Positions 15,101 through 39,639 of a stretch of 64,000 bases of DNA are shown piece after piece. The position numbers and the translations under genes are program-made. Under the pieces are notes generated by a model that ran no database searches, was not told the origin of the DNA, and saw only the letters and a list, made by a program, of their open reading frames with translations. The stretch's first letter is position 1. Each line of letters begins with the position of its first letter. Source of the stretch: Fimbriosthenelais zetlandica (Eukaryota); the NCBI GenBank assembly GCA_977030845.1, contig OZ365113.1, forward strand, positions 14,942,001 to 15,006,000, in the 5' to 3' direction.

Positions 15101-15532
15101 TTTTACATCATTTTAGTCTTTTTCATTGTACCAGCAATCGTCATGGGTCTGTCTTTAATCAGTCTCTATCTTTTACTGGGGGTTGGTTTGCCCATTATCG
15201 TTATGATTATTTTTGTTATCGTTGTCAATGTCCTACAAAACAAGAAACCAAGTGCATTGCCCAAATGTTTGCGGTCGTGGCAGTGGCTTCCAGAGTGGAT
15301 GCGGTCTTTGCGCCCACTTGACAGCCTGTTTAGCAAATGCTTCCCCTGTAGATGTTGCGATAACATATTCCAGCGTACCAGGGAAGATGATGAATCCGAA
15401 ACTATCGACGTTGGATTAAACGAGAAATCAGCATCTAATGTGATTGACAATGGGTCAGACACAGAGGTTACTATAAATGCTGGCTACACCAATGCCGCCT
15501 TTATAGCCGAAAAGCAATCCACAGATTTTTGA
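12175..15532 (+). CDS. SLC34A: Sodium-dependent phosphate cotransporter, type II (NaPi-II / SLC34 family), ~636 aa from the first in-frame ATG
   Basis: join(12175..12325,12505..12636,12743..12886,13014..13205,13384..13496,13618..13819,14556..15532), 1911 nt, phases consistent. It contains EDPW, both QSSS repeats ([10 protein letters not shown] and [10 protein letters not shown]), both GANIGT/GSNIGT motifs, a loop with several N-x-T sequons, the Cys cluster KCFPCRCCD and C-terminal STDF. The true start may lie in an upstream exon. Confidence 0.96.
13985..14428. mobile_element. Fold-back MITE, copy A (SLC34 intron 6)
   Basis: About 180-bp imperfect inverted arms (GACCTTAGATA..GATTTCACTACAAAT..TTCCTAAACATGATA..GTTGGTTAGCCAATCAGAAT versus their reverse complement at ~14265-14428) flank a short spacer. 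It is homologous along its length to 42381-42931. Confidence 0.85.
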
Positions 15533-17449: not shown

Positions 17450-17641
17450 CTAGTAGTAGATACGTCTATGGTGATGATAACGAGGGGAGTAGACGATACG
17501 TTCCGAATAGTGATGATAAGGGCGAGAGGTAGGCCTACGTGGTGATCCAAGGGACTTAGTAGTAAGGGGATCCCTTAACAGCAGGGTGACGAAGCCAATC
17601 GGTGACCACCACGTCTCTGGAAAGTGGGTGGGAAATCTAGG
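17450..17641 (-). CDS. Alternative terminal exon B of the uncharacterised minus-strand gene (63 aa)
   Basis: Acceptor AGTTTCAG|CCT. Phase 0 gives PRFPTHFPETWWSPIGFVTLLLRDPLTTKSLGSPRRPTSRPYHHYSERIVYSPRYHHHRRIYY*, with the same composition as the upstream exons. Its WSPIG motif is shared with exon 33710..33456. Confidence 0.55.
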   Translation of the reverse strand, partial: PRFPTHFPETWWSPIGFVTLLLRDPLTTKSLGSPRRPTSRPYHHYSERIVYSPRYHHHRRIYY

Positions 17642-18645
17642 CTGAAACTTTTATTCGGAGAATGGTTAAAATCATGTTGCAATAAAAGCGTAAAGACTCA
17701 AACAGGACGCAAAATTGGAGTCATCTAGTTTAAATTGTGATGCATTGTTTCATAAAATTCACCACAGCTGCAAACTTTCCCAAACACTTGTCATTTGTTA
17801 ATATCCGACAAGAGATGATTAATCTCGTGAAACATTGTTGACTTCTGCAATTTCTCAGTATACAAAGTTCACAATTTAGGCCTACGTTAAATGTAATGGT
17901 TACAGATCATACTTGTTTCGAATTCCGGTTGACTACATTACAAGCGAATCTCCAAGAAAAAAATCTAAAAGCTATAGATAAAAAGAGCCTCTATCATTGA
18001 CGTTCATAAGGAGAATATAGAATGTCACACCATTATGTATAAAGCCTAGATTACAAAAGAGAAATTGATAGAAAAATGGAGACACTTACCTAAGTAGATT
18101 ACAAAGTCGAGATACAAAAAAAAGACATTTTACATGCAGGAAATCCTTAGAGAATTATCGTTTTAGATACAAGTAAGGATTTTACAACAGTTCCTGTTAC
18201 ATAAAACATGGCCTCATTATTTTTACAGGTACCGTGGCACACTTATAAATGCACAGGAAAGGTATAGTTATACAGAACGTATCATTAAACCGATAGAGAA
18301 ATGGCAGATTAATTGGCATATACCACGCTGATAAACACACGAACAAAAAAATAGGATTACACAAAGCTTCAAAAATAGCATCTCTCAGTCCCATCGCATC
18401 CTCACAGCGGTACATTATACTTTGGCACGCCAAACTCATGAGAAAATAGACAAAATGGTTTCCTCACCTCAAATACCAAAATGTTAACCAAGAGGACAAA
18501 CTTATGCGTGTTAAGTAGTCAATGGTAAAGAATTATAATGAAGGAAAAGATAGGAAATGTGAGACCATGTATGCATGGTATATGTAGAGAAGACTGTCAT
18601 CACACTGTGCTTTACTTACCGAAGTGTGGGTAGTTGTAGAGATGT

Positions 18646-21600
18646 TTAATAATCGTAGTAGCCGGGGTCACCCTTTGTCTTACATAGTACCTCACGGGCC
18701 CTCTTCCTAGCTTCCGATAGAGGAGGGCGCCGAGGCGGCCCCTATAATGGGAAGGGAAATTGGCAAAGTGGTCGTTACGTACTATGTATTACATGGGTTA
18801 ACATACGCTGATCGATTATAAAAGCATAATCTACATTGATGCCTATCATACTTTGCATATGTCTTACATTTCTGCTTAAATGATTACATTACTTATTTTG
18901 TATCTGGGATACTTTGAAGTGAGGTCACATATTGATTATTTAACATCATTACGTTGACGTTATTATTGTTCTTCATTCAGAAATATAGATCTTTATACAT
19001 CTGCTAAAATTTCATAATTACAATAACAACAATATTTATAATATCGAAAATACTAGGTACCAGGCATGCTACCAGTATGGGTCATTCTCATGCCTTGAAA
19101 ATGTACTACAGAGTATTTCTTTTAAACATCATTCCTTGTCATGAAAGGTAACAACTATGACCATGCGATGAACATTTGGTGTTTTGCAAAGCATTAGATT
19201 TGTGAGCCTCAGCTTAAATACCGTTTCATAACGTGCAGATCAGTTAAACGTATGGGCCAAAATGAAAAAATGTAAACTATTGAACAAGAATGAAACTGAA
19301 TATTTTTGAAAGAAATGTTAAACACTTAGTAAATACTAAACATAGAGCCATGCTGCTTTGTATCGCACAAAACCCTGGTTTTCTGTAATAATCAATTTAA
19401 GGATTTACCAACAATATTACACTACATGGTTATTTTTTGGCCTACCGTTTGGGCAGTAGCAGATGCTTCTTGTCTTTTCTAACAACATTCTTCATTTGAT
19501 TCTGCCTACTTGGCTCTGTTGCAAAATATGAGGCTGCTTCACAAAACGTTCATCACATGATCACAAACAGTCACGTGACGCCAACGAGTGCCATCACGTG
19601 ATCACCTCTCACGACAGGTCATTTTTCCACACAGAACATTTGGATATAGATAACCGTTTCGGCATTCTATTAGGGTCACACTATCTTTTACAAATGCTGC
19701 CACATAGATAAGGCATACAAAAGAGGTGTACATCAAGTACAAAGGGTGTAGGTGTTTGAGAAGGAAAAGTAACATGAAGGATCTTTTTATACTCTCCGGG
19801 AGCTTCTTAATCATTAATTTCAGGAACACACGTAACCTGCACCTATAGGCCTAGGCCTACTGGTTCAAAGTGGGACGGTAGGCTACAAAATATTATAGAG
19901 AGCTACTTATACTAGCCCTAAATTGGAAGAGAAATTTATTTGGTATAAAATTCGGCCAAGAAATCTTATTATGCCTATAAGAGGTAGCCATGCTAGGAAA
20001 AAATCTAACACTGGCAGGTTACGTTTGTCCCTGATCACCTTGAGGCATCCCGACTGTGTGACAAAATGAACCTAAGACACTCGGAAGTTTATAGGCCTAC
20101 ATTCAACACATATTATAGAATGGGTTGTATAGTTCATGAGAGAAGATTTCAGGTAGGAGAAACACACACCAAACTAAAGATTATAATCCATCTAGGAGAA
20201 AAGTAGGCTATCAATGGTGGCATCAAATGATCATTGGTACAGCTTTTTAAAAAGGGATTAGAAAGATAAATTAACATATATAGGAGAGATAAGAGAAGAA
20301 GTAATAGTAATAAAGGGTCTATATATCATAGGAATACAGGTGACATTCAAGAAAACACAACATGTGGAGGGAAGACGTCGGAGAGAGAGAGTGACGCGCC
20401 GGTTGCATGTGAGTATGTGACGTCATGGATAGTTGTGCACTACTTCATGGATGTACGGCTTACCCTCTCGACCTTGGTGGGGGTTGATGGCAGACTCATC
20501 CTTCGCCCAGTGGAGACGGGTGCTGGTCTATAAGATGGTGTATAGGACGGTGCTGGAGTGGTGTGAACAGGAGCTGGGCGGTAACGCTCAAGTTGCGGCA
20601 TTCTAAATTGAAACACCCCCCAGAACAGGAAAACATTAAGGCATCCCTAAAAATTAACATGGCCTTTCGAACACACAACTGGTACAGGGGATTATATCTT
20701 AGAAATTATAGGAATAAAAAATAGCAAATAATAACTGAATTCTGTGTTGGAAGAATTGGCCATATTGTTGGCAATTAAGAAAATTAATAATGGCAATAAA
20801 TGAACTTAATGAATAAGAATAGGGAAAACATATTAGGCCTTTATATTATAGGCGTACTGGAGTTAAAGAATAAACTTGTGAACCAAAATCGGAGAATGAT
20901 AAATAATGGGCTAAATTAACAGCAGAAAATAATAATTGGACCCTGTACCAGGGAGTCCGATTTAAAGAAGAAATGCTACGAACCTTTTTCCCAGAGTTTT
21001 CTTGCGATACATGCTAGCTATAGTACAGGCCTATAGGCCCATCTAGGCACGAAGCATCATCAGTATAGTAGGCTAATGCAAAGCAGAGAATTCCGTGGAA
21101 TTCTATATAGGTTGTCATTCAAGCTTAGATTTGTTCCATTAAGGCCAAAACTGAGATGGCTCCAAAGATCGTTTGTCAAAAACCATTTCATTTTGTTTCG
21201 ACTTTTTGACAAAATTCCAGAACCTTACATCCGATTTCAGGAGAATTTCGGCCTTGTATCATACAGGCAATTTAGGGCAATATTAAATAGCGTCATAAAT
21301 CTTTTTACATTTTATTTCTATTCAAACACATACTTTATATCTGATGTTCTAATACTCTCAAGACCTAAGTGTTATAGCAAACAAGTCTTTCGGAACAAAC
21401 CTCACTCAATAAGTATTTAGGTTCATTTAAGAGTAATAATATTCATCACACTTTCAATGGGTTCCCTGGGAAAATATATATATATGAATCATAATTCTAA
21501 TGGATCAAGCAATACTCTCTTTAAGTTTCACAAATTGAATTCTTATACAAACTAACTAATGGAACTAGTCTATGTTTGATAGTAACGGGTAAAAGGATGT

Positions 21601-24600
21601 TGGTGTGACCAATGCGGGGGTGCAACAAAGGCAATGATTAAGCGGCCAACAGTCTAGGCTAGTTAACATGTTGAATTAATCAACATCTGGATGCCATTGA
21701 CAAAACATTACCAAGGCATGCGGTAAATGTCGAATGTGGAGTGCAGATGGCATTTTGGGACTGATTTTCTGAAGCCGATAATAAAAAAAATTACAAACGA
21801 AAGAAATTATGCATAATTAGGGAGCGAGGAACAATAAATCAGTTCATTATTGAAAGTACTATAAACAAAAATACTTTTGAATATGGTGCTCTTTGGGTCA
21901 AGCGCTCAAATTAAGACAAGACGGTGAGGTATCCAGAATTTAATGGATAACCAAATAATCAAGCATCTCAGCTACCTTTTGAAGGGTTTACCCAGTGAGA
22001 GCGCTGCATACCAACTGATGCCTTGCTGGAGGCACCAATAATGTTTTCATTGGCACATTTTGTGCAAGCAGCTTTCAGAGTGGTAATTTTGAAAATGGAG
22101 CACAAGCTCTCTTTTTTTATCTTTTTTTTCTGTTATGGATTGCTCGAAGCAGAAAAAATAATAATAGAAATGATTGTGTTGGTCGATATCCCGCACACCA
22201 ACATCCTTTCATTTACCGGGTGTACCTGGCGGCCAGCTCGTCATATTTTTGTTCCACTTCATACCCAACATCCGGTTCCGGTCCCAGGTGAACGGGGAGG
22301 TAGCGGTCCAGCATCACCCTATGGTGGTCCATCTTGTTACGGGCATCAACAGCCCTCGAACGGAGCCCGGCATAGGACGAGTATCGATCAGGGACGATCA
22401 TAGACTCCAGTCGCGACTGAAATTGGTAACATTTTTTGTTATGTATGTATTGAAATAAAAGGTCAAGTATATGAAAGCTATAAATCAAATGAAAGCTATA
22501 ATTGATAGATGGTTGAAAAAATATTCAAATATTCAAGAAGCAATATTTAGTTAGAGTTCTTTTCCTAGTTATAACATTGAACAATATAGCTTTCAGGCGT
22601 AGTTTTTAGTTCAATTCATCAATTTTCATTCATAAGCCATTGGTTATGGTATAACTATTTGGAATTCCCATGAGTTCCATGAAGGAGGCAGAGATAGGCC
22701 GATCAGACTAATGAGAAATGTATCAGAACTGCGTGGGCGTATGTCTGCTGAGCCAACGAAAGAATGTGCAAGCAAAATATAAAGCTTCTCCAGCGTTTTT
22801 AAAATTGTTGCCATGTTCACAAAATTGTACAATATGGACAATATAAAGAAGAGCATTATGTCTAGATAGAACATTCAGCGATAAACCTGTGAAAGAGATA
22901 CATTTATGAAAGCCACATGCAGAGGTAGACTTGCACATCATAGGATCATAATGCAAAATAAAGTAATAAATAGTCATTTGATAATAAATTCAAAAGAAAC
23001 AAAAAAGTAATAACAAAATCTTCTCCTCACATGCAAAAGAATTTTCGAAATTAAAGAGTAATGATAAAAGCTGCAATTCAAAATCAGCGCCAGGTCAAAG
23101 GGCTCTTTGTCGGCAATGACCAAGGCCCCTGAAGACAGTCAAAATGGGGAAAATGACGAATGCACCAGCTGACCAGGAAATCAGAAACAAACACTGCTTG
23201 GCCACAGATCCTCTCTTGTGGCTACTGACCTCAATGTCCGCCGCCCTTGAGTATCGGGGGAGGCTAGGAGAACGCGGGACTGTCGTTACATGGACAGGTG
23301 CGGGGCGGTAGTAGGAAGAAACACTATCAACCTGAAAACATGTGAAATCATCCAGGAAATCAATTTCTTATCTATTAGAACACAATATACCCATACCACC
23401 CACGTTATCTACAAGGCTTATATACGAGTGTGTTAACAATTAATAGGGGCGGGCCTAACTTTGTTCCATTAACTGTCCATATACTGGGCGAGTTCTCTAT
23501 GATATAAAAATGAGTTGCCACTGGGTTAGAATCTGAATTTCTCTGTGTTACTGACGTCTTTTCGCTATAGAGCCATAAGATGTTAGAACAGATCGCTTTT
23601 CAATGGTAGAGGCCTAAAACATCAGGTCAAGCCAAAGCCACAAACCTTGTAATATAAACAAATGTTTATGTGATCATTTTATTATTATTATCCTATATTT
23701 TAATACTTGTATTGCATGGGAGCCTTAGTAATATATACCTTTATTATGAGAAAGATCTCAGACCCAACATATCCACATTATAAGAATAATATTCACGGGG
23801 CAAAAACCCACCAAATAACCCTAGGTACCTGTGCAAGTTCTATAACGTGGAGGTCTGACTGTGGGAGGCTTGTGGAGGTGGAAACCTGAGAGGTCTAGTA
23901 TTTATAGGAAGTCCATAGTCAGGAGCTCCAAGACTTCCCAGCAAAGAAGTAATGTACATCTACCAGTAAACTATAGGACGCCAACTCTTGTGGTAGAATG
24001 GCACTCAGTGAGCCTATGATCATAATGGTGGATAATTGTATTTATTCTCCAGCAGCCAGGAGGCTATAATAGCCATATGGTTAAGCTGGTACAGTTGGGT
24101 GTTTTGAAATACAGAGCATACAGGCCCCATGGAAATCTCCATGTGCACAGACATTCAGTCCATAAAACTTCACATGTACAGTTAATACAAATTGGACTTC
24201 CATCTTCATGTCCTTTCCCCAGTGATATGGTTAAATTTAGCAGGAGGGATTACTATCATTTTGCCAAGAGATCCACGATATAGTTCGAACAGTTATCGAC
24301 ACAAAATGTAATGCTGAAAAATCCCCTCAGTCACAATCAGGCTTTCTGCTACTTTTTGATTTCTTAAATTACCTCTGAAAAGGACATAGTGGATCTATAG
24401 CAAGTTCCCTCCAAAACATCTAAGCAGTGTTAAGCCTATGATTAATATTCGATTTGAAATGAGCTCTTGGAGGTGGAAACCCGAAATAGGTCTACACTGA
24501 TTTGCTTTGGTATATCAATAAATAGATGCTGGAACTGCAAACACATAATGTTACAGTAAGGATGGTAATCGCAACAGAGGTTGTTTCCTATCTAAATACC

Positions 24601-27600
24601 CACATTTCTTATAGAGGAAGATAGAAGCTGAAGGCAACATGGTTTCTTATCACTGAATGACGCACGTGCAATGGCTTAGCATGGAAATGTATTATACTAG
24701 ATAAGCTATACAGGAAACATCCGACTTGCTACTTGGGCTTGATATGATTGGATTCAAGTAGCATAATTATGGATCTTCAGTCGGTGCCCTTAACTATAAT
24801 TAATCTCCGTCCCTTTCATTCCACCTCAGATGCCTTTCAATTGATCTATGTGGATGGTGGGCTGACATTTACCTTGACCAAATGTTTTAATAACCAAAGA
24901 AGACCGACAAAACTTACTTAGGGCCTACATATTCTAGCCAAGACCCTGAAATACAGTATGTATGTTCAAACAGAATGTACAACATATATACCACCAGTGA
25001 GACAGGTAAACGAAATGTCCCTCCAGTCCAATACCACCTATGGCTTTTAATCTGTTACCCTACAGGAAGTCCAAAGTGATCACATCAGGCAAACCCAGAC
25101 ACATCATCGATGTATAAAGAATATAATTATGTATATTTAGTATGTATAATTTCATGGAAAGCTGGCACGATAATGGCAGAGCTGTTTTTCCCCAAATTTA
25201 TGGGTACACAGATTATAATATACATTATGATATGTTCTAGCTGCATATCTGCGAATAGGGAGCCATCAATTTGCCCTTCCTAAATGCAATTCGCTAGTGT
25301 TTTTTCCTCTTCCCAAGGACGAAATATTTCCATTGTGTAGGAAGAGCTTTGTTTATTTTCACCATTCCCTCAAGGGGAAGTGTGTATATAAATTATCATA
25401 CAGATCGTGGGGCCCTATGAACACTGGTACTAAAATCTCACATAATATACAGGAGCTAGGGAAGCATTCCTTGGGTAAGAAGGAACGAAAGATCTAGTCA
25501 TGGCCTAGAAGTGCTGGCTGCTACAGGTTAAGCTATTTCCCTCCAAGTCATCAATCTATCTCGAGCCTCATTTTCAGCGGGTGGTGAATGTATATATACA
25601 CGCCCTGGCTTATGGACTCTAAGTACACTCCCATGGCTCACATACTAAGTTAGTATAGTGAGCTAATGATTTCCGGCTAAATGGATGGTAGAAGAAAGGG
25701 CGTTTCCCTTCATTATGTTTTGTATATAAGAAGTAAAATGATTAGTTAAAGACAAAGAGGATGTTAACATTTGTAGGCTACATTGATACATGAGCTTCGC
25801 AGATATTATATATGCCAAGGTGATAATCAGTGACATTTATGTTTGGGGAAAATGCACTGGTATTGCACTTAATTATAATTTTAGACTGATTAATATAGGC
25901 CTAAAGGCAATCATGCAGATGGGATGGCTCCTATTTCACAATGATTTTACTTTTGCATGCGGTTGGTAAAAGCATAGAGGAAACGACCTCCTGGTATAGG
26001 TTAATTCTGGGGCCTGTTTCAAAAGGAATATTAGCAATGCTAAGTCTATGGCTAATATTTGTTTTGAAACAGGCTCCTGATGCGAGTTGTTGTCATTTCC
26101 GCTAAATAGATTTTCTTTTGCGACATCGTCGTTTCTTTTGCGACATCGTCGTTTCTTTTACGACATCATCATGAAGTGAACACTTACTCCCGAAGTTGTG
26201 TATTTCATTTGGGTATAATCCTCTTGGTGACACAGTGAATGGACAGAAGTGAATCATTCACATGAACTTACAGAGAGGAAAATCACTCTTGTAATCACCT
26301 CTTTTCACAGACAGCAGTAGCACAGCGCACAATAGAAACCTTCAGGTATAGCCTTCATATTGAGACACATTTCACTTCCGGTGCATGACTTTAACTGACG
26401 TCACACGCGCAAGTATAGACACAGGCAACACACTGACTTGAACCACGTGTAAATTAGGCTACATAAAGCACTCATTAAAAATAAATCACGTTCCAGATGT
26501 GATCATTACCTTAGGTGTTGGTGGCTTTCTTCTATATGAGAACAACTCGTCAGTATCATCAGTATCCAAATCAAGGGATACAGGGCGTGCAGGGAGGGAG
26601 TAACGCCTGTCACGCTGGAAGCCAGGTGGATAGTGGACAGGGCGATTATAATCCCTTCTAGGTTGTGTAAGGTAGGATGCGTATGTACGAGTGGGAAGGA
26701 CATATTCCTTATAGTCTTTGTCATAGGTGGCAGCAGCAAGGGGCATGCCCCGGAAGTAGGCAGGAACACTGGAACCAATCCTAGGGTTAAGGGTGGACTG
26801 GGTAGATCTTGATAGGGGTCTGTCAATGATTTCACTGGCTTTTGATTCAATGACACGGTGGTCAGGGTACGTACGAGTTGTCCTCGCAGTGTAGGGCACA
26901 AGGGCAGTGGAAGAAGAGGACTGGTAACCAGCAGGGCTTCTTTGTCTTGTTGCTTGTGCCCTGGGGGCAGGCAACCTATCGAAGGTCCTGCTGTACACAG
27001 GCACATGAGCAATGGCGGTGGATTGTATTGGTTTCTGCACGTGAGAAGATACATGGATGTGTTTAGATGGAGATGGTGGGGGTTTTCCTACCGTGGGACG
27101 GCGTTCAATAACACTCTTAAACTTCTCTGTTATAGTTGAAATTGGTTCATAACTTCCGATGAAGTCATCCTTGGATGATAAGAGTAAATCAGTGGTGGAG
27201 GGTGTTGGCCGGCGCCTGGTCGAGCCGCCGAACGTCGGTTTATGCCAGGCCAATGACTCAACTTGTGGCCCAGCCTCTGACAGCAAGTTCCTGAATTTGA
27301 CAGCATTTCCTCCCGTGTGATCCTCTCGTGTCCTGACAGAGGTAGACTTGTTGGTTATTGTATAATTCCCGGCTCGTTGGTCGCTTGGCACTACAGCTAA
27401 GCGTGGGTCCTCCTTCTGCCATTTTCCTCTTAGATCACTCTTGGGTAGGTTTAGAGCTATTTTTCGTTTTAGTGTGCCATCTGGATTGGCATTGGCTTCT
27501 ACCACCATAGTGTGGGAAGCCACAACGAACACCATCTTGTCGTTTGTTGTGTCCTGAACGGTCTACAGACACTCGAAAGGCCGGTCGTAGTGGTACATGT

Positions 27601-30600
27601 ACCCCTACTCCGGCAGGTTAGTATAGCATTAGCTACTCCTGATGTACTGAGTAGCCACACAGCCTGTTGTGGCTGTGTCCTCCTTGACTGTTCTGTTCTG
27701 TTACTAAAGATGAAGCAAGCGCCTTGGAGAGGCGGGAGCGAAAGAGCAGCTGGAGCAATAGCAGCAGCACTAGCTCACCTAGAAGCTAAACCTTTCCCCA
27801 CTCCATGTACACCCTGGCCCCCCAGATGGATTAGCTGGCGAAAGCTTGTGGATTTGACTGGTAGTACTGTGAGTAAGTTGCCTGTGGAACTTACAATCGC
27901 CCTGCCCACTTCACACTGCTCCGAAGCATATGGCAGTGCACTCTGCTAGAGCTGGATATTTCCTTTTTCTCCACCACAGGTCTGCCCAGTACGATGCCTA
28001 TACTCCTCACACCATCACTATTGGCTTGACCTTTTCTAGCAGTCGACCTTTCCTAGAAATATACTCCAACATGCCTCATGGGTGGACTACATCAGCCCAG
28101 TAGCTGGGTCAGACAAAAATAGTTTACGCCCCGGATTGCTGACACCCACACTTTCAGAGTGCTCCATTATATAGTATCTAGATATTCACACTACAATAGA
28201 GTTCATTATCATTATTATATGAATTAAGATTCCAATCCAATACAGTCCTTGTCTCTGGACATTGTGCTACATTAATGGATCAAATAATACTTTCTTAGAT
28301 TCTTTAAAAGCTGAAATTCAGTCTTCCAATATTCCTCGTTGTGCTGACTGGGTTTAACTACATTTATACCCCTTGTTTTTGACTCCCCTGTTTGCGTGTA
28401 ACGCGATGGCACTAAGAGATAGCTGGATGCCCTCAGGGCCAAATGCCAGCCATGATCTAGTGACCCGGTTCTATAGTCTGCATGCTAGGCGCCAAAGTCA
28501 AAATATTTCCCCTGTTCTTGACACAAAGAACATACATATTTCTGGATATTATTCAACATTGATCTATGGGAGCATACAAATTTGCGGCAAAGCCATATAA
28601 CATTGCTTTCAAACCTGACCTGTATGTATGTAGATAGCTCCTATGTAAGGAATGTTGAAAGGTTAATACCCAAGTTGAACTCAACCTTTTACCCTCAAAC
28701 AAAATCCCGGGATATAACAAACTTCCGTGCCAAAATTCAATTTCATCTGCTTTCTGCCTTTCCTGACCTTAAAATTCATTGCTCTTCTCTCAAAAGTCTC
28801 GAATTAAGATGTCATTCAGTGCATTTAATGGAACCTCTTATGAACAATGCAGCAGGATTATAATAGATGGTATATTATAGATATCGCCAGAAATCTAAGT
28901 CGACATAATATGCAACAAATGTCAGATACAATCAGGTTGAAAGTCAATCCTGAAACGATCGCCAGTTTAAACACCCTACATTCACATACGTCTTACCAGA
29001 CTAATGAGTGGAAACATAATTTTACTGTTAAGGGTATCCTTTTCAACATTTCCACCAGAGGTTTTATAGTGTTAAGCCTCCTATATTTCTTCCTCATGGT
29101 AGTGCCAGGAAGATGGCCTATTTCCTGGCAGTTTGGCTGATAGTGTGTGTACTGTTAGGGCGACCTCAGCTGTTTCTTAAAATAGCGCAGGTGATGCAGC
29201 TGATGGTTGCTATGGTAACGGAGATAGGGAATAATATAGAGTGTTTCTAGGAGACGGGTGTGTTTGCTGCTCCAGGAGATCGTGATAGCCCCTGTTTTTA
29301 CAAGTCCTTGCAACATGTGTGACTGACATTGACTGATAGCATATTGTCATTGGAGCTTGTAAGTCATTATCGAGGGCAGATCGACCTAAGTCAACTCTGT
29401 ATATTGTAGCCGAAATCCATATTCCCGATGGGCAATTGCATACTCTATGATGATATTACTACTTATTTTGTGCCCTATAATGTCTTGACACCTTCATCCT
29501 CTGAGCAAGTGTTTTATTGGGGTTTTTTCTGACATCGTTCAGAACAATGTAAATAAAACACTAAAATCTGTCAAAGGAATAGCAGTTTTTCATAGTTGGA
29601 GATACGCCAACATAGATAACACAGATGTTCGGGAGAAGAATTCAGATAAATCTACCGCCTATCCACAATTAATGGTCTAATCGACTGAGCATTCACAGCA
29701 TTGAGAGACAAAAATGTATCTAAATGTATAATGTAAAGTTGTTCAATCAAGTCAAATGCCAACTTATATCCTCAATCCGTTGTTAAATGCTAAATGCAGC
29801 ACCAAATACTCTAAAGTGCATGCAGGTAGTACAACAATAATTCAATAATACATTTTTTCCAATGGTAGCCTATAAGCAGAAACGTGACAGCCTTTACTGA
29901 AATGGAATTATCACACCCCAAGAAGATTCAGCTGCATTGCTGAGCAGTGAATCGAGTTTTTTTTTACTTGGTCGGATCTGTGGCTTCCACCCACACATTT
30001 TCCTGCAGAGAACCTTATGGACTTTCATAGTTTCTTCCCACAGAAGAAATCAAATTTAAAACATACTGTTAACTTTCATTTTTCCTTCCCTTGTCATTTA
30101 CATCTTATATGCATATATGCAAGGTTAATTACTAAAGTCTGCCACATCACAAGATCAGAACTCATATCAATACGTTTTCAGCTTCAAAGTGTACTTTCTG
30201 CGACATCAGCTATGTGCTGACGACCATATTGAGTCACGTCATTGTACAACCAATGGCAAAAGCCATTAATTGAAGGTCCTTCCTGACAGCAACTTACAAG
30301 TGTAGGCCTATCATAACAAGGTCATAGTGGGTTCCAAACCTATAGCATCACAGTTGTATCTAGGTGATATACCTTGGAGATCTTAACAACAGTATAGTGA
30401 GTCTAGTCAATATAGGAGAACATATATCATGTGATCCCACACAAGTGTAATTGCATTGTTCTCAAACAGAATTTAAACAAGTTCCGGGAAAGACACATCT
30501 AGCCAAATAAAGAACCACAAGGAAATCTCGAAAGGATTTAGTGATTCAGTGATATATCATACAGCATTAGATATAATTATATGCTGTATAATAATGAAAT

Positions 30601-33600
30601 AAAATTGTGTTGATTGACAGGCAATTATTCAAGGTACAACCATTACAAGAAGATTCAAACCTCGTGGCAACTCACTAAAATATTAGTGACAGACCCAGTT
30701 TAGGAACTAAATCGGTTACCCAGCATTCTTAATGATGGATAAAAACCACACAAGAATAAATATTTAAACCCACATCATTGCTACTTTAATATTAGTCAGT
30801 GCAACCAAAGTTCTCATATAAATTTAATTAGCCTATATCCAAAATATACTCACCCCGCCAAGACGACCAGACTGTCTGTATGGTCGCACTGGAGTATGTA
30901 GATAGTCAGAATGGTAGTAGGGATCGTCCCATCCCGTGCTGAGCTCACGCTGAAACAAGACATCATCCGAACCACTTAGGTAACGCATACTGGACACGGT
31001 TCACTAGTCTCCCACAGAAACAAAATCAAACCCTGGCTCTCACAAAGACCGAAATAATCCTTTGAAGTTTACACAGTGTCTTATTTTTTCCCCTTGTTTT
31101 CCTTAGACTCTAAGTGGAGTCTTAGTGAGATAGAGCCGGGGTTTGAGTGTGAGATAGTCTGTATTGGAAGGCTTATGGATGGATGGATGGCTGGCCTGGC
31201 TGGCACTCAGGAAGCTCTCTGGGGAAGCACAAGAGCCTCCTGTAAACTTCCTACCCTATGGCAAGCAGGGGATGTAGCAGAGCTATCTGTTCACAGTATT
31301 TCTACAACCCACGCCCCCCTCCACATGCCCTTGTACTTATACATGTGCGATTTTCCTCGGCTGGAGGAAATGTTGCTATGGCAACCGTCTATTAGATGCA
31401 ACACAGGCAGTAGTTGCAGAACTAGAGAATCGATGGTGCCATCGTGAGGTGGTCGCCATAATCATCTGCTTCATCCCCTGACAGTCAAGGTGGCTATAAT
31501 GTTGCCGAGTCTTGCTTTCAGTATTGAGATATGACCTTAGATTCTTTATCATGTGCAGCATTTGGTGGTTGGAGGTTAGATATATATACTGTACCTCGAG
31601 TCTGCTGAGGGCACCACGGGCCTGGCGAACGGCGAGATCTGCGGATGGCACATGAACATCTGGCCTATGGACGGTGGTCCTTCTATCAATTGGTGGCTCA
31701 CTTCCTGCACGGGCACGGTGCGACACATAGGCGGTTATGGGCGTGTAGTGATACCCTGGGTGACTATCCTATATGGAATAATATTCCAATACAGCAATCT
31801 TCATCTGAAGGTAATTTCCTCCACATGGGTCCCAGGAAGTCACGAGGAATTCCCATCCTCTGACTCCCTGCGACATATGACCATGTGGCAGTAGAAGATC
31901 ATGCCATATCCGCCATGCTGAATGAAGAAACAAGATCTCTTGCTCTCAAAAATTCTTCATCCATGTGAGTGAAGCAGGCATCGAGTTGTAAACACGCTGG
32001 TTATCTCTTTTAATTGTGAAGCATATCTCAAACTAAGCCATTCTGTAACCTCTAATAAGCCGCGTGGCAAGAACTATCATTGTGTGAACAAGAACGTCAT
32101 GCTAGTAATTGTATGATAAATGTCCAGTTTTAACAACATTCCTCCTGTCACAAGGATATGCGTAATGCAGCAAGATGCCTCAAAATATGCATGGTCAGCA
32201 TATTTCAAGATTACTTTTTAGCTTAGTCTATAGTTTGGTGCAGCCCCCAATCCCTCTGATTATATTAGTCAGGAATAGGTGGGCTCTCCTTCACACTTTC
32301 TCCCAGATATTTTACGGATATGTGCACCAATGTGAAAATTAGTCAGAAGCCTTCACATGCCAAACAAGCTTCTGATGCACAGATCAGTGAACGAAATTTG
32401 CCAAAGAAGGAGACCCAAGAAAAATCATTTGTGACAAGCTGATGTTGATATTGCGTTAACGAATTGATATTAATACTACAATAACCTTATGACTAGAGAA
32501 ACAAAGGAAACAAACTGGAATACTACGTGCAGTTAAGGTCATAATTCCCCGTGTCTCTACATTTTGTGATTCTTATATGGTACTTCAGAGTATCAAGACC
32601 TATTTGATATTTACTCTTACCAGCCAGGCAATCATCCATCCAAGAAAACACTCTTTATTACAATATATTCCTTTTAAGTTCATATATCAGACTAGATTAA
32701 AGTTACACTCATAGAGCATGAAAAGTAGAAGATAGACATGTAATAATCATCCCCAGTTCAACGAACTTAAGGTCTAAGTCTACTATGTACGAAGTCTTTT
32801 GATATGATAATGTAATAGTGTGAATTACTAACATGATATTTTTTAAAGAAATACTAGACTCCAAAGAAGATGGTATTTTATTTTAAATTGAATACCAATC
32901 TTACGAAATATTGATCAAAGTAAATTTATAAACAGAAATTTAAAATAGAATGCTCCTATTGGAATCTAGTTTCTCTTACAAAAATCACCATAATTTGAAA
33001 AGAACAATGCATCCATGAGAAGTATTTCATGCAAGAGTAGGGTGATACAGGTTTAGATATTTCCTGGTAAACACTTCATGGATAGAGAGTGACAGATATG
33101 AAAGGATAGGATGTTTTAAACTGGCTTCAGAACATGTCGACAGTACTATTATCATAAGTAGCCTACACCTCCCATTTTCATGATCTGCACATTTTGGACC
33201 TGGATAGGCTCTCTTGTTGTTCATGACTGTGTCACCCACATTTCCTCTGAAGGAAAAGCTTATTAGTTCATGGCTGCAATATTTCTGAAACGAAACTGAC
33301 GTGCAAACTGGTATGGTATGGCAATTAGGCATTTAAGCTCTAGGCATCAAGCGCCATCTTGTGCATGAGATGCAACCTGGATTGAAACACATTGTTGCTA
33401 GATCAGAGTGCAATCATGAAACAGTAGATCTGCAGTTTTCTGTGTTTTTATATACCTCGTAACCGTAGCCAGCATAACCAATCGGAGACCAATGGTAAAA
33501 GCCATGGTGATAGCCAGGGTGATGCCATGGCTGGTGGCGGTACTCTGTTTCACAGCATTCTGTCTCACGGAAAGAGGGTGGTACACTGGTTGCACGCTGG

Positions 33601-36600
33601 CGAGTCCTGGGCAAGTGAGTTGTCCCCAGCAGAACAACTGGGGGTGAACGTGACCTTGCACGTCCACGCGAGCGACGCACCAATGGAGTTGTCCTGTAGT
33701 CTGATGCATCCTACGAGGAATACAGGAAAAGTAGAGCAGCCTCTATGAGTTTCAAGTAGTTTCTCCATTAAATATCAGGAGATGTACTGTCCTGTCATGT
33801 ATTGTCGGAGATAATAAAGTCACTAAATATCAGGTCCTATACAGAGGCTACCCTGTTGGTGTCCAGTTTTGCATAAAGTTTCTGCTGATCAGGATTCTTG
33901 AGGAATGACTGGCAGTACCTTGAAATGTGAGGTGAGGGTTGGATTTCAGGTATGGTACACATGCAGTAAGTATTTCAGATGCTGGTAGTGGTAGATTAAA
34001 ATAGCTTTTTGGAGACGGGATGGGGGGAACAAGAGCTAAGAGCAAGGAGACGTTTGGTAAAATGATTAAAATATACTTCCCTTACCAGGATGATAAACTA
34101 TCCTAGACTTTCTGGTGTCTAGTGACCATAAACACTTGTATATGAACACCCCTGAAAGATTGTTTAATGGACATTTGGATAGGCCCTACCTATTTACAAG
34201 CCTGAGTATTGGGCAAAATATATCCGAAAGGTAAAAGAGGAAACTTAAATTAAATGGTTCAGGGTCAATGTGGAAAAAGAGGAGAAACTAACAGTTCACT
34301 CACAATGTACGTCTCATGAGGCAGAGACATATTCTACAAGTGGACAGAAATAAATGTAGACGAGGATACACAGCAATTCACCACATAGCACACAGTGCCA
34401 CTCGGAAGAAGAGAATAGCATTGCATTACCTCCTCTTCGTTGACCACCTCCTCATCAGGGTCCCCTTCATGAACTGCTTCTTTAGCAATAGGTTCATTGG
34501 GATCAGCAAGAGTATACAGTGCACTGGATCGCTTCGCTCCCTTCACCAGAGGCGGGGCTACCGGGTTCATCAACCTATGTTTTTTGCTGAATTTAGTATC
34601 TAGCATTCTTTCAAATTCTTTGAGTTCATTTCGCCCAGCTTGAATCTTTTTGCTAAGCTCTGGATCAAGTTTATCATCGTCCATGTATGAGGGACTGAAA
34701 TCATAAAGATCGCCTGTTGCAGGTACGAAGTCTTCCAGTCCAGATTTTGGGAGTGGTCTGTTGATGAGGCGTTCAAACATGATGTCCGCATCATCACTTG
34801 GATCACGCTCTGTCTTTGCTACAGCTGCCTTTGCCTTTGCTTTGATCAATACCTGATTCACAGGCATTTTCTTCACTTCCTTTTCAGCTTCAGATTCTTC
34901 AAGGGGCTTATGCTCTCTAACTGGGCGTGGTTTGTACACACCAAGGGGGTCATACTCAGGATATGGATCTTTTGGTTCTTCTTCCTTGGCTGTAATCCGC
35001 TCCCAAAGCCGTTTTTTCTCTTTGATTGGTCTCGGCTTTGGCTTTTTGTGGTAGATGTTACCTTTTGTGTAGTCCCAAGGATAGCGCAGCTGGTCTTTTC
35101 GGCGCTCCTCTTTGACATTTTTGTCAACTGGTGCACGTCTCCTTTGGAAGAGGAGACGGCGAAACCCAGTTTTGACAGCCACATCAGAGTCTGGCTTGAC
35201 ATTATCGAAGTCCAATCTGTTCTGTGTACAAAAAGATTTCTCATACATTTGAGGGCATCGATCTGCATCGGAGGCTTCTCTCAACTTAACAGGTGGATTG
35301 ATTTTCTTACACCAATCTTCCAATTATATCTAGGGGAACCAGAACCATTCTAACGTTACTACATATTTATTGTCAAAGCCTATGCGTTGCATGGAAAAAT
35401 TGTATGTTAATGTCAGAATATTTTCCGTTTTTCATGCTTGAAGCTCTTATCCCATGCAGAACGATTGTCAGAATTCTGTTCGAGCTAAATATATATTCCA
35501 CTATCATGACAAAACAAACACCAAGTATATTCTAGTTCTAGTCTAGACAAAATTTAAAGACTGCAATAGAGACCCCTTATTATAGGAGCTTACAACAATA
35601 CGTACAAGTACCATTCGACACAACTCATAGTATACATGGACCAAGAACATATACAATGTAAAGGGAATAAAGAACTACCCTTCCTGCATCATGACCCTGC
35701 TTTCTACTGTATAAACTCGACCCTGAGTGCCAAAATATATATAGCATAATTACTTCTACTTTTCTTATCCACTGTTGGTCTCATCAAATTATGAAATGGA
35801 TATTATAGTTGAATACAGGGATTGAATAAAGTCAATAAGTATGTTATTCAAAAAGGCAATAAGTATGTTATTCATTGCATAAGCAGTTGAAGAGAGTACA
35901 CAAGAGTTAAAAAATACTTAGTGCATGCGAATTTGGGGGTTCCACCTTATTTCATTTTCAAAATATCACTCTATAAAACTTACAAAAGGATTTCTTGATA
36001 GATTATTATCGTACTAAACTATCAAAGTCAAAGGGGGTACCGTAAATCGTAGTTCTGAACAGCAAATATGAATTTTCAAAACCTGGTTAATTAAACATTT
36101 CTAAGCCCACACGGCAGTGATGGTCTTGATAAAAGCGTGCAGGAAAATTTTAATTAGGACATTCAAGTACTATATGTTTTACTGAGGTAAAACACATGTA
36201 AAATGTAACAATTTCCTGTTAATGTATGGGTATCCATGGTTAATTTATGAGTGTGTTGCTGTACACATAAATTATAAAAAAAAACGGAGGGGAAAACTTG
36301 GATGTTTAAAAAAATCATGGGATCCACAATTCTGCTGTCCGAATGTATGCAGGAGTTAAGTCATACTTAATATTTCTTTCAAGGTCGGATAAAAATAGAG
36401 CAAACCACCTCACTGCAACTTAAAGAAACACAATCTGGACACCTTACATAAAACATAACACAGTATATAAGATATCAACATTCAATAATTATCAAGAAGT
36501 AGATATTTAAGATTTCAACTATTATTTCAAGTCTACGATCAAAGTATAGATGTATCTGATTTAAGAACTACTTATTATAAATAATATCTTGGTCTTCATT

Positions 36601-38667
36601 TAATAATAAAATACTCTACATGTAATTTATGCAATACTTAAGGTAGAAATTCAATTTAACATAACTATTTCATTCTCTCTCTCTCAATCACACATAGCCT
36701 ACAAACTCCCTCTCTTTCGCAAAGACAAACATAATATGTCATGTATATCATGTCAGTATGTGCCTGTTTGTCCAGCTGAGTTACTCTTGGGGAACTATAC
36801 ACAATAATACATGTCTACGTCAGTCGTTGCCCCATATATCAATCTTACTTTTTTCGGTCATTCAAATAAACCAACTAAGTTCTCAGGCAGCCCATGCAGC
36901 ATTACTTACCATCCTTGCTGTGATGTCACGAAGCAGAGCAGCGTCCTGGCGTCTGGAGGCTGAGCTCAATGCATCATGGTCATCACAGACATACCTGTGG
37001 ATTCTTTGGGCCTTCCGAGCAGCTGGCTCCCCAAAACCGTAGTCATAGTTCACCTCAACTGTTAAGATAACAGATAGAACTATGTAACTCTTCTCAAGCT
37101 TTTACCGAAGAGTAACCCTTGGTTTGCGATCAGACTGCACAACATTTTAGTGCAATTTAATTCAATGACCTTTATTGAATGTCATTCATAGTGCCTCTGA
37201 AGGACAAGCTCAAGGTTGGAATAGTAAAATCACAAAATTGCGTTAAAAGCCTCAATTAAATTGACACTGCACGCAATTATATATATGTGTATAAAGTAGA
37301 TGCAAGTGGTAAGACGAACTTACCTACGGATGGGGGCACGGACCTGCACCTCCTTGTTGATAGCGCTACCATACTTGATTTGGTTTCGTAACGGAAGCCC
37401 TGAAATCACAAGTAGGAAGTCCCTGTACCGATTGAACAATTTGATTGTAAACAGAAGATTTCTAATGTATGCTCCCTGATCCAAGTCAGCCATGGAAGTT
37501 TCTTTCCTTGAGTAAGAAATAATATAATTATTTGAAATTCACACTGCCAATTTCGCAACAGAGAAGCTATCCACAGAATCGATCGTTTCGTTTTTTTTTG
37601 TGGCTGTTCCACCACTCAGGAAGCATACATATAATCGAAATTACTCCATCCAGCCAATATGCTAGTTTCAATTAGCAGATGTATACAAACATACAAAATA
37701 GTACATTCAAGAGATTAATGTCCGAACAGCACATTAATCACGATTTGTTTGCACAAATAGCATCCCAGGTGATCACTTCATAGGTCTACAAATCCGGGAT
37801 GATTTGCATTAACTCAGGATTGCATGAGAACATGAATATATTGGATGAGATGCTTTCTTTTTTCGGGGTTAGAGGCAGCCATTCTTATGAATGTTATCTT
37901 ATAATTATTATTGGATGTGGAGAAAGAGAATGATTAGAGTAGAGAAATAAAGAGTTCAATAACAAGAATATAAATCGGAAAACTTGATGCCTAAAACAAG
38001 AAATGAGTAGTAAAAAAAAAAAAAAAAAAAAAAATGTCGGTGATAAAGAATTTTGTCAAGATTTTCACCTGGCATCTATATCTTGGTAATCTAAACATAA
38101 TGATAGAAATATTATGATTACTCTGCTGAAAAACTTGACCTGGCATTTCAATCATTTTCATTATACAATGTATGCATGCTGATTTGAATACGATTATATT
38201 ATCATGCAAGATATGGTTTCTTCTTAAATAGTATCACGCCAGTAAAAACCTTATAAATGAGGCTGCATTCAGATGATGTACTTAGGAGAATTCAGGTGAT
38301 ACGAAATACATTTATGATATACAAGATTAAATTCGCAAACAATGAATATTGGTACACAAAGGAAAGGATGGAAGTGGTATTCCGTATTTTATACATGGTC
38401 CGGCCAAAATCCATTGCAATGCATGACCTATGGACTGCAGAACAGAACCAGTTTATATTGGTATATATGTGTATTAGAACGAGGGCAGAGTTTCAAACAG
38501 ATTGGTCACCCCTTTGTGGTGGTACGACACTGCAGTTTTGGTCTTCAGAGAGTAAGGAAAGGTATTTGTACGTCATAAGGAAATGATCACATCAATCTAT
38601 GGTCACAGCACACCAGTCAGGTGGGATTCTCTGTACTTGTAGCTATACTTACTTGTCCCTTAGCCAT
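18646..38667 (-). CDS. Uncharacterised multi-exon Pro/Arg/Tyr/His/Ser-rich protein (~780 aa, or ~1070 aa with the optional 35-kb exon); possibly a muscle filament-associated protein
   Basis: complement(join 38667..38653, 37399..37324, 37058..36910, 33710..33456, 31768..31595, 30949..30854, 27562..26510, 23331..23230, 22416..22217, 20602..20464, 18741..18646). Every junction is GT-AG with matching phases (0,1,0,0,0,0,0,0,2,0), and the peptides join naturally across them (RQARGALSRLE|RELS, RAADIE|SRLESM, KYDELAARYTR|MPQLERY). The protein ends ...LSEARKRAREVLCKTKGDPGYYDY*. The start is uncertain because the exon is open from 38699. The function is inferred. Confidence 0.8.
26009..26077. mobile_element. 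Small inverted-repeat element (MITE-like)
   Basis: 27-bp arms GGGGCCTGTTTCAAAAGGAATATTAGC and GCTAATATTTGTTTTGAAACAGGCTCC with 3 mismatches. Confidence 0.6.
26112..26170. repeat. 20-bp tandem repeat (TTTCTTTTGCGACATCGTCG) x3
   Basis: Two exact units and one diverged unit are directly visible. Confidence 0.9.
26510..27562 (-). CDS. Large (351-codon) exon of the uncharacterised gene, S/T/P/R-rich
   Basis: Open reading frame TVQDTTNDKMVFVVASHTM...FSYRRKPPTPK. Acceptor GTCTGTAG|ACC and donor CCTAAG|GTAATG are both phase 0, so the exon can be skipped. It could also start at its own ATG (27535). Confidence 0.8.
29167..29219. promoter_or_regulatory. Intronic cluster of three E-boxes, a MEF2-like site and an RFX X-box
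   Basis: CAGCTG 29167-29172, CTTAAAATAG 29176-29185 (one mismatch to the MEF2 consensus), CAGGTG 29188-29193, CAGCTG 29197-29202, GTTGCTATGGTAAC 29206-29219 (perfect X-box consensus). Motif match only. Confidence 0.45.
31372..31385. promoter_or_regulatory. RFX X-box-like palindrome GTTGCTATGGCAAC
   Basis: Exact match to GTHNYY-AT-RRNAAC in an intron. Motif match only. Confidence 0.35.
34430..35329 (-). CDS. Large optional K/E/P/D-rich exon (~285-300 codons) of the uncharacterised gene
   Basis: 298 open codons (LEDWCKKINPP...DPDEEVVNEEE) end at a phase-0 donor GAGGAG|GTAATG. The best acceptor (CCCCTAG|, exon start 35329) is in frame but is followed by ATA TAA. A weaker in-frame acceptor would start the exon at 35284. 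Confidence 0.65.
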
Positions 38668-39639
38668 GTCTTTATCATTAGCTTCCGTCGTATCAGGACC
38701 TGACAGATGAACAAAATATAAAAAAAGTAATCCTTACACAAAAGCCTTTAAGATGCAACCCGATACGTGTATCTTTATAATCCATGGAGTGATATACAAT
38801 CGCTTTTAGTTCCTTGGCTTATGGGGCTTTTCCTCTAAGGGGTCCTAATGAATATTGGCACATAAATGCATAGTTCATGAACAAAGCGATTCGTGACAGG
38901 CAAATATATGCTTTTCAGGTTGCAAACCCAAGCAACAAAGAGAAGACCAACTTCTCTGAGGCTATTTTTGTACTCAAAGTATACTGCCAATTAGACCTCA
39001 GGTATTAGGCCTACCCCGTATTATGGCATTATGATGAAAAGGCCCTTGTACAGCAATGGTTGCAACATAATTATGTGAATATAGGTGATGGAGAACGATT
39101 CCACTTCAGTTGTTTTGCAGGTATCATATATATTTCTCAAAAATTCATGTTATCAGGAAAGTAGTTATCTTCTCATCTTCATCGACAATCGAAAGTCAGG
39201 TTGGATTTACATGGCGACATTTTCTGGTCAGTCAAATATCAGAATTCTGTGCCCCTAGACCGGATTACTATGTACATGATTTGTAGTTGGAGTGAAGGTT
39301 CTGAAAAATGGTAGTTCAAGGCAGGGGTAACCCACGTCTCATAGTATGACGCACCAAGGAATTCATCCCTCTCATGATAGTCTTGTCTTGTTACCCTTTC
39401 AAAATATTCTGTTGGTAAGTTCAACCTATACAGAATGCTAGCTCAATTTAGCAAGGGTTAAGGGACATGATGAACTCGTACCATTAGCGTATAAAACGAA
39501 AAGACTTTGTCTAGGCCTACCATGTTTTATGTGGACATTATTACCTGACCCGAATAGGATTTATATATAAGACCTTATTAAGACAATAAATTAGACTATT
39601 TGTCTAATCAAATATTATATAATATTTGCCTTCTACATA

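Follow-up and report, generated by a model that had tools for sequence, protein, structure and literature searches.

The 64-kb stretch of DNA analysed here (the window) is part of contig 19 in a eukaryotic assembly of 447 Mb and 79 contigs. Its minus strand harbors a gene with 11 coding exons, the existence of which we consider near certain. The gene is present as a single copy in the genome and is, judged from its sequence, the orthologue of the unnamed annelid "hypothetical proteins" ELU11057.1 and KAK2145284.1. About two-thirds of its product is predicted to be disordered, with four short, confidently modelled helices located on conserved motifs, plus a helical, non-globular block encoded by exon A. 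The most defensible mechanism, to which we assign an even chance, is that of a disordered adaptor, regulated by phosphorylation and subject to alternative splicing, which would dock via these four helices. The family to which this conserved single-copy gene, from a genome that is probably an annelid's, belongs is present in public databases only under the label "hypothetical protein", without a Pfam model or literature. With a motif signature, a cassette-exon architecture, and candidate phosphosites now at hand, the family can assist the annotation of spiralian genomes.

Eleven Coding Exons Join in Frame

The gene model was rebuilt from position 38699 to position 18646 on the minus strand, independently of the exon list of an earlier, sequence-only reading of the window, which had claimed that eleven or more exons join in frame with canonical splice sites. 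This claim held, as we obtained 11 coding exons, extending from 38667 to 18646 and spread over ~21 kb, with AG at all acceptors, GT at all donors (mostly GTAAGT or GTAATG), and phases that agree throughout. The coding sequence of 3027 nucleotides specifies 1008 amino acids, and its sole stop codon is the terminal one. Moreover, the modular exons ascribed to this large gene are borne out by five symmetric phase 0-0 exons, termed A, B, C, D, and E.

Exon 1 (38653..38699), the first coding exon, contains the ATG at 38667-38665 and ends in phase 0 at the donor CAA|GTAAGT. The encoded N-terminus MAKGQ is similar to MARGR and MTRGR of the homologues P0028 and P0012, respectively, and the acceptor at 38700/38699 indicates at least one further exon of the 5′ untranslated region (UTR) upstream. 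Exon 2 (37324..37399; 76 nucleotides, phase 0 to 1) comprises the first RxxSxP site, RCRSVP, which aligned with RRRAASVP of Capitella and P0045. Exon 3 (36910..37058; 149 nucleotides, phase 1 to 0), based on tblastn with six homologues and on the family alignment, encodes the conserved N-terminal helix motif S-RRQD-x2-LL-x-DI. The best conserved block is provided by exon A (34430..35221; 792 nucleotides) with the motifs KTGFRR, RYPWDYT, YPEYDPLGxYRPRP, RPLPKS, and ELxEFERxLD. Exon B (33456..33710; 255 nucleotides) is disordered and contributes the RxxSxP sites RSRSPP and RATSVP and a tail rich in Y, H, and G.

Exon C (31595..31768; 174 nucleotides), to which tblastn aligned the Capitella protein P0028 and the closely related P0031, carries RAGSEPP and the LAVRQAR helix, and exon D (30854..30949; 96 nucleotides) encodes RELSTGW-DDPYY. 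The junction between the two reads ...SRLE|RELS, as had been proposed, and the same join is found in homologue proteins (RIEKELG, RIERELG). With cag|GAC at 27554/27553 as the acceptor, the clade-specific exon E (26510..27553; 1044 nucleotides) would be of phase 0-0. Exon F (22226..22416; 191 nucleotides, phase 0 to 2) encodes the helical module ARNKM-x-HR-x-MLDRYLP ... YEVE-x-KY-x-EL, and exon G (20464..20602; 139 nucleotides, phase 2 to 0) a P/Y-rich stretch with MPQLERYRP and an RRMSLP site. The last coding exon H (18646..18741), the boundaries of which had been given exactly, specifies the C-terminal motif RKRAREVLCKTKGDPGYYDY followed by TAA. This motif is near-invariant in P0028, P0029, P0031, P0045, P0046, and P0048. 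Downstream, the 3′-UTR probably ends at the AATAAA at 17655-17650.

The 3′-end of exon F required a correction. The exon itself, previously placed at 22416..22217, is real; however, the donor chosen lies 9 nucleotides downstream of the donor supported by homologues. Two in-frame donors are present at this distance, CAG|GTACAC at 22226 and CCG|GTAAAT at 22217, and both are kept in an orthologous contig of another species together with ~25 nucleotides beyond. Since the homologues read ELAxR|MPxL (ELAER|MPQL), the donor at 22226 is preferred, and exon F most likely ends there. The TAA of the second donor would terminate the protein upon intron retention.

The Exons Belong to One Conserved Gene with Annelid Relatives

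A search with exon E gave three homologues in the form of open reading frames (ORFs), and the DNA of two of them was compared as contigs. The orthologous contig is a 39.7-kb stretch merged from L006, L002, and L005, and the contig L003 derives from a closer related species. Eight of the 11 exons (A, B, C, D, E, F, G, and H) occur along a single strand of the orthologous contig in unchanged order, with identities of 40-71% (for instance 67% for exon A, 52% for exon C, and 68% for exon D), and splice sites and phases match at every junction inspected. The differences at codon positions 1, 2, and 3 amount to 0.27, 0.18, and 0.59 for exon A, to 0.24, 0.19, and 0.45 for exon F, and to 0.19, 0.14, and 0.42 for exon E when compared with the closer species. 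Third positions thus diverge 2-3 times more than first and second positions, a pattern that indicates purifying selection on the reading frame.

When exon A was compared with protein-cluster representatives without a length filter, 25 matches were obtained. One of these, P0022, was discarded as a repeat artefact with a marginal match to DUF7690. Transcript-like homologues, that is, long ORFs filling contigs of 1.6-3.1 kb, originate from JGI, Logan, and a Tara metatranscriptome. The only named relatives are two annelid proteins, ELU11057.1 of Capitella teleta (CAPTEDRAFT_228467, R7UXP5; 714 amino acids, "hypothetical protein") and KAK2145284.1 of Paralvinella palmiformis. The protein had been taken for a deuterostome one, which is probably wrong, because all named relatives are from annelids. 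P0031, an ORF derived from a transcriptome shotgun assembly and called complete, is 85% identical to the Capitella protein. With the Capitella protein P0028 as the query, low-complexity words dominated the homologue search, and apart from P0028 itself only a near copy was obtained. A search with the C-terminal region of P0029 yielded four unnamed transcript-like proteins.

Several homologues unite motifs from distant exons in a single chain. Between them, P0028, P0029, P0043, and P0045 contain N-terminal motifs (RRxxSVP, the RRQD-LL-DI helix, and the exon-A block), motifs of the middle part (RAGSEPP and LAVRQAR...RxE|xEL, the latter spanning the C|D junction), and C-terminal motifs (the exon-F module followed by RMPxL, and RKRxRxVLCKxKGDPxYxDY). 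In line with this, the Paralvinella locus (L007) has exons 3, A, C, F, and H in an order colinear with the window, and so does the Capitella locus (L008) for exons A, C, F, and H, with a weak match to exon D out of order. The presence of N-terminal, middle, and C-terminal motifs in one homologue chain and the colinear annelid loci therefore show that this is one gene and that the exons do not belong to separate genes. The Paralvinella annotation (JAODUP010000690.1, 10001-34959) splits the orthologue into two models, namely KAK2145284.1 (LSH36_690g03072; partial, 569 amino acids) and a subsequent 174-amino-acid model containing exons F and H.

The Capitella and Paralvinella proteins share with the window protein an identical order of blocks from the N- to the C-terminus, from RRxxSVP through the RRQD-LL-DI helix, the exon-A block, RAGSEPP, the LAVRQAR helix, and DPYY to the exon-F module, RMPxL, and RKRxRxVLCKxKGDPxYxDY. 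They differ from it in that the identity between the motifs is low, and in that the window protein carries the 348 residues of exon E, which both annelid loci lack. For the two annelid proteins we found no name, Pfam family, or published function, and a literature search with the Capitella identifiers was empty.

The Product Is Predicted to Be Disordered with Four Conserved Helices

The sequence-only reading had described the product as mostly disordered and rich in P, R, Y, H, and S. The computed composition agrees (P 10.0%, R 10.8%, S 7.9%, Y 5.4%, and H 3.3%), and the AlphaFold (AF2) model of the core isoform P0045, calculated with nine sequences, has a predicted local distance difference test (pLDDT) value of 48, with 338 of 526 residues below 50. 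In this model the confident helices fall exactly on four conserved motifs: RRQD-LL-DI, LAVRQAR, the exon-F module, and the C-terminal motif RKRAR-VLC-K-GDP-YF-Y. The pLDDT values of the helices in the homologue model are 84-92 for RRQD of exon 3, 71-80 for exon F, and 77-89 for the C-terminus encoded by exon H. The short helices predicted earlier are thus recovered on all four motifs, and the four peptides then quoted are the best conserved blocks of the family. For exon A, modelled with 21 sequences, AlphaFold likewise gave confident helices and no compact fold (pLDDT 67, predicted template modelling score (pTM) 0.22).

Likewise in agreement with the earlier statement that no domain can be named, neither the exons of the window nor any of more than 20 homologues gave a Pfam match, even with the threshold relaxed to E ≤ 10. 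Searches of PDB sequences with P0029 and with family profiles of exon A and of the N-terminus gave nothing significant, so that the peptides match no well-characterised family in either collection. The sole PDB match of the N-terminal profile was CbpA (E 0.27); a J domain (DnaJ) was rejected, as R-P-P stands in place of HPD and the Pfam DnaJ model did not match. Comparison of the exon-A model with AFDB clusters and PDB by Foldseek produced only noise (template modelling (TM) score ≤ 0.1), and a language-model (Atlas) search with a 329-amino-acid ORF gave no usable match.

Candidate Phosphosites Suggest a Regulated Adaptor

The window protein contains six RxxSxP sites as compared to 0.88 expected, a number that was reached in none of 2000 shuffled sequences. 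The enrichment is also seen in P0028, P0029, P0031, and P0039, and several of the sites recur at corresponding positions, namely RxxSVP near the N-terminus, RAGSEP, and sites of the RRYSLP type. RxxSxP is the consensus of basophilic kinases and a mode-I binding motif for 14-3-3 proteins. The six sites suggest a phospho-regulated, alternatively spliced scaffold. With regard to splicing, exon A is skipped in P0031 and P0045, where the RRQD helix runs directly into the following disordered region; exon A is a cassette exon.

According to the mechanism that we propose, the protein would act as a disordered adaptor or scaffold, regulated by phosphorylation and alternative splicing. Through the four short conserved helices it would attach to a partner structure, which is most likely part of the cytoskeleton, and the disordered linkers with the six RxxSxP sites would switch this docking or the location of the protein. 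The phase 0-0 exons A to E would allow alternative splicing to add or drop modules, resulting in putative isoforms of 1008 amino acids (full length), 744 amino acids (without exon A), and 660 amino acids (without exon E).

A comparable design is known from synaptopodin and myopodin, disordered cytoskeletal adaptors regulated by 14-3-3 proteins, which are likewise long and proline-rich and contain several R-x-x-S-x-P sites. In adaptors of this type, kinases and 14-3-3 proteins use these sites to switch binding or location. The analogy is one of design only; Pfam and PDB searches revealed no sequence similarity of the window protein to any such family.

Several points weigh against the proposed adaptor. 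P0043 lacks RxxSxP sites altogether, so that not every family member has them, and only a short motif points to phosphorylation and 14-3-3 binding. In addition, the inclusion of exon E is without support from any transcript, the junctions of the gene model are based on conservation and on transcripts of homologues rather than on reads of the species itself, and small or non-conserved exons may be missing from the model.

Exon E May Mark the Start of a Shorter Transcript

Exon E is present only in this species and three relatives, and no counterpart was found at the Capitella and Paralvinella loci or in any of the transcript-like homologues. It may be a cassette restricted to this clade; alternatively, an internal promoter may give rise to a shorter isoform in which exon E comes first among the coding exons. 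In the latter case two kinds of transcript would be formed, the full-length mRNA and a shorter mRNA comprising exons E to H, translated from the ATG at 27535. We regard this as rather doubtful, and it does not exclude the adaptor described above, with which it is compatible. What argues for it is that, in the three species with available DNA, exon E is conserved from precisely AAG-ATG-G onwards (ATG at 27535-27533). Because the orthologous contig contains an in-frame TAA 9 nucleotides upstream of this ATG, the three species share no phase-0 acceptor other than AAG|ATG. On the other hand, the window and L003 each possess a phase-0 acceptor 18 nucleotides upstream of the ATG (cag|GAC and gag|GAC, respectively), which keeps the frame open from exon D. 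The absence of exon E from all transcript-like homologues is likewise in keeping with a separate short mRNA; however, no transcript beginning at exon E was found either, and the ORF of the third species (P0003) starts at the second Met.

The non-coding sequence upstream of exon E bears on the same question. In contrast to other introns, ~600 nucleotides directly upstream of the exon (27554-28143) align with L003 at 60-75% identity. A coding function of this segment was rejected, as the gaps relative to L003 are not multiples of three, which argues that the segment is conserved as non-coding sequence. Further upstream, intron D-E contains an island at 29110..29256 on the minus strand, where an X-box, GTTACCATAGCAAC (29219-29206), the E-boxes CAGCTG and CACCTG, and the MEF2-like or TATA-like element CTATTTTAAG are arranged in a row. 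The intronic cluster of E-box and MEF2-like motifs that had been pointed out before is thus real and conserved in a related species: the 147 nucleotides from 29256 to 29110 are 80% identical over 148 nucleotides to positions 2013-2159 of L003, and the surrounding intron is unalignable. It is one of only four non-coding islands that can be aligned with L003. We also tried the island as an exon. This was rejected, since its open frames are broken by stops, and as these differ between the two species, the island is non-coding.

The same intron of the orthologous contig contains an X-box-like site and CTATTTATAG at 14855-14902. A TATA-like CTATTT(T/A)(A/T)AG follows the X-box of the island after ~25 nucleotides, in the window as well as in the orthologous contig, which speaks for the shorter mRNA. 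It is possible that the island functions as an enhancer or as an internal promoter. The promoter of the shorter mRNA could tentatively be placed either near the island (~29200) or within the conserved 600 nucleotides upstream of exon E, though we would not expect this to prove correct.

Resemblance to Arthropod Myofilin

The sequence-only reading had suggested a thick-filament-type muscle protein. With the taxon adjusted, the protein would be the spiralian counterpart of arthropod myofilin, a disordered, phosphorylated thick-filament protein held in place between the myosin tails by a short conserved helical domain, an interpretation that we consider unlikely. Myofilin is mostly disordered with one short conserved N-terminal helix-loop-helix (PMC9820631, PMC10573858) and was reported to be phosphorylated in myofibrils (PMC9820631). 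Like the window protein, myofilin of insect flight muscle thick filaments is mostly disordered, basic, and rich in S and P, with a short conserved helical domain. In the language-model search, the two nearest named clusters of P0045 were both Myofilin (PF15929), with scores of 0.85 and 0.83, and for P0029 Myofilin ranked third with 0.76. However, Atlas scores below 0.9 are leads only by the calibration of the tool itself, the number of shared features was 157 (below 170), only 5 of the 10 best matches were in the Myofilin family, and similarity of this kind may reflect composition alone.

The Pfam model itself does not support the relationship, as PF15929 matched none of the more than 20 family members or the window exons at E ≤ 10 (membership cut-off 27 bits). 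A six-frame search of the genome with PF15929 likewise gave no match, although the control searches were also without any match, so that this result carries little weight. According to PMC9820631, myofilin has an N-terminal domain of ~35 residues in which LKG, at about residue 32, is invariant. Set against this description, the nearest sequence in the annelid family is L/V/M-K-T-G, located ~30 residues after the RRQD helix; the invariant LKG is not found there, and the L/V/M-K-T-G sequence is part of exon A, which is skipped in P0031 and P0045. The two also differ in length, with 168-370 amino acids for myofilin and 490-1008 for the annelid family, and for the C-terminal motif and the exon-F module of the latter no counterpart is described for myofilin (PMC9820631, PMC10573858).

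With respect to regulation, a role in muscle would agree with the two E-boxes and the MEF2-like site in the conserved island, with a perfect MEF2 consensus in intron D-E of the orthologous contig, and with another such consensus 140 nucleotides upstream of exon A in Capitella. However, E-boxes and MEF2-like sites are short sequences that occur frequently. Homology in the strict sense, with the annelid family as the spiralian homologue of arthropod myofilin, appears to us quite unlikely. If it were nevertheless true, a core non-myosin component of the thick filament, so far described only in arthropods, would predate the split between arthropods and annelids, and annelids would have retained this component as a longer protein that is alternatively spliced and multiply phosphorylated. 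To our knowledge, the proteins that set the structure of invertebrate thick filaments are known almost only from insects; the gene would therefore matter more if the myofilin lead held.

X-Boxes and Possible Regulation by RFX Factors

In addition to the X-box of the conserved island, a second one, GTTGCCATAGCAAC, was identified by motif match on the minus strand in intron C-D (31372..31385). The two strict X-boxes compare with ~0.02 expected. Genome-wide, the X-box GTTRCCATRGCAAC gave 3064 strand-hits as compared to 4 for the reversed control (~750-fold), an excess that we take as a clear sign that the motif is functional. The pattern looked for in an RFX target, an X-box consensus at the locus that is conserved between species, is present here: one of the two X-boxes is conserved in the related species, the orthologous contig (three loose sites) has an X-box-like site in the corresponding intron, and of four X-boxes at the Capitella locus two are located in introns. 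Judged by these motifs, the gene would appear to be under RFX-type regulation at least as plausibly as under myogenic regulation.

It is a further step to conclude that the gene is an RFX target whose protein is linked to cilia or sperm flagella and not to muscle, and we consider this improbable. Beyond the X-boxes themselves, it would agree with the detection of homologues in marine plankton metatranscriptomes and with SPATA6, a family of the sperm connecting piece, which was the next named cluster in both language-model searches (0.78-0.80). However, the SPATA6 Pfam model (PF14909) gave no match on family members, and the 40-kb Paralvinella locus contains no X-box. Moreover, in the full-length gene model both X-boxes are intronic, so that their proximity to a transcription start is only putative, and RFX factors regulate non-ciliary genes as well. 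The finding would gain weight if the conserved island with its X-box acted as an internal promoter and thereby connected the gene with ciliated cells.

Other Features of the Locus

Intron E-F contains an island at 25498-25598 that is 76% identical to L003 over 101 nucleotides. It was considered as an exon and rejected, as the frames are broken by stops. Another island in the same intron, at 23870-23912, is 86% identical to L003 over 43 nucleotides.

Downstream of the gene and convergent with it, an exon of a Na/Pi cotransporter is located on the plus strand at 14576-15532 (PF02690, E 4e-10), and this neighbourhood is common to the window and the orthologous contig. Finally, an ORF of 440 amino acids at 2857-4179 on the plus strand ends in a FAM210A/B-like domain (PF06916, 27.3 bits).

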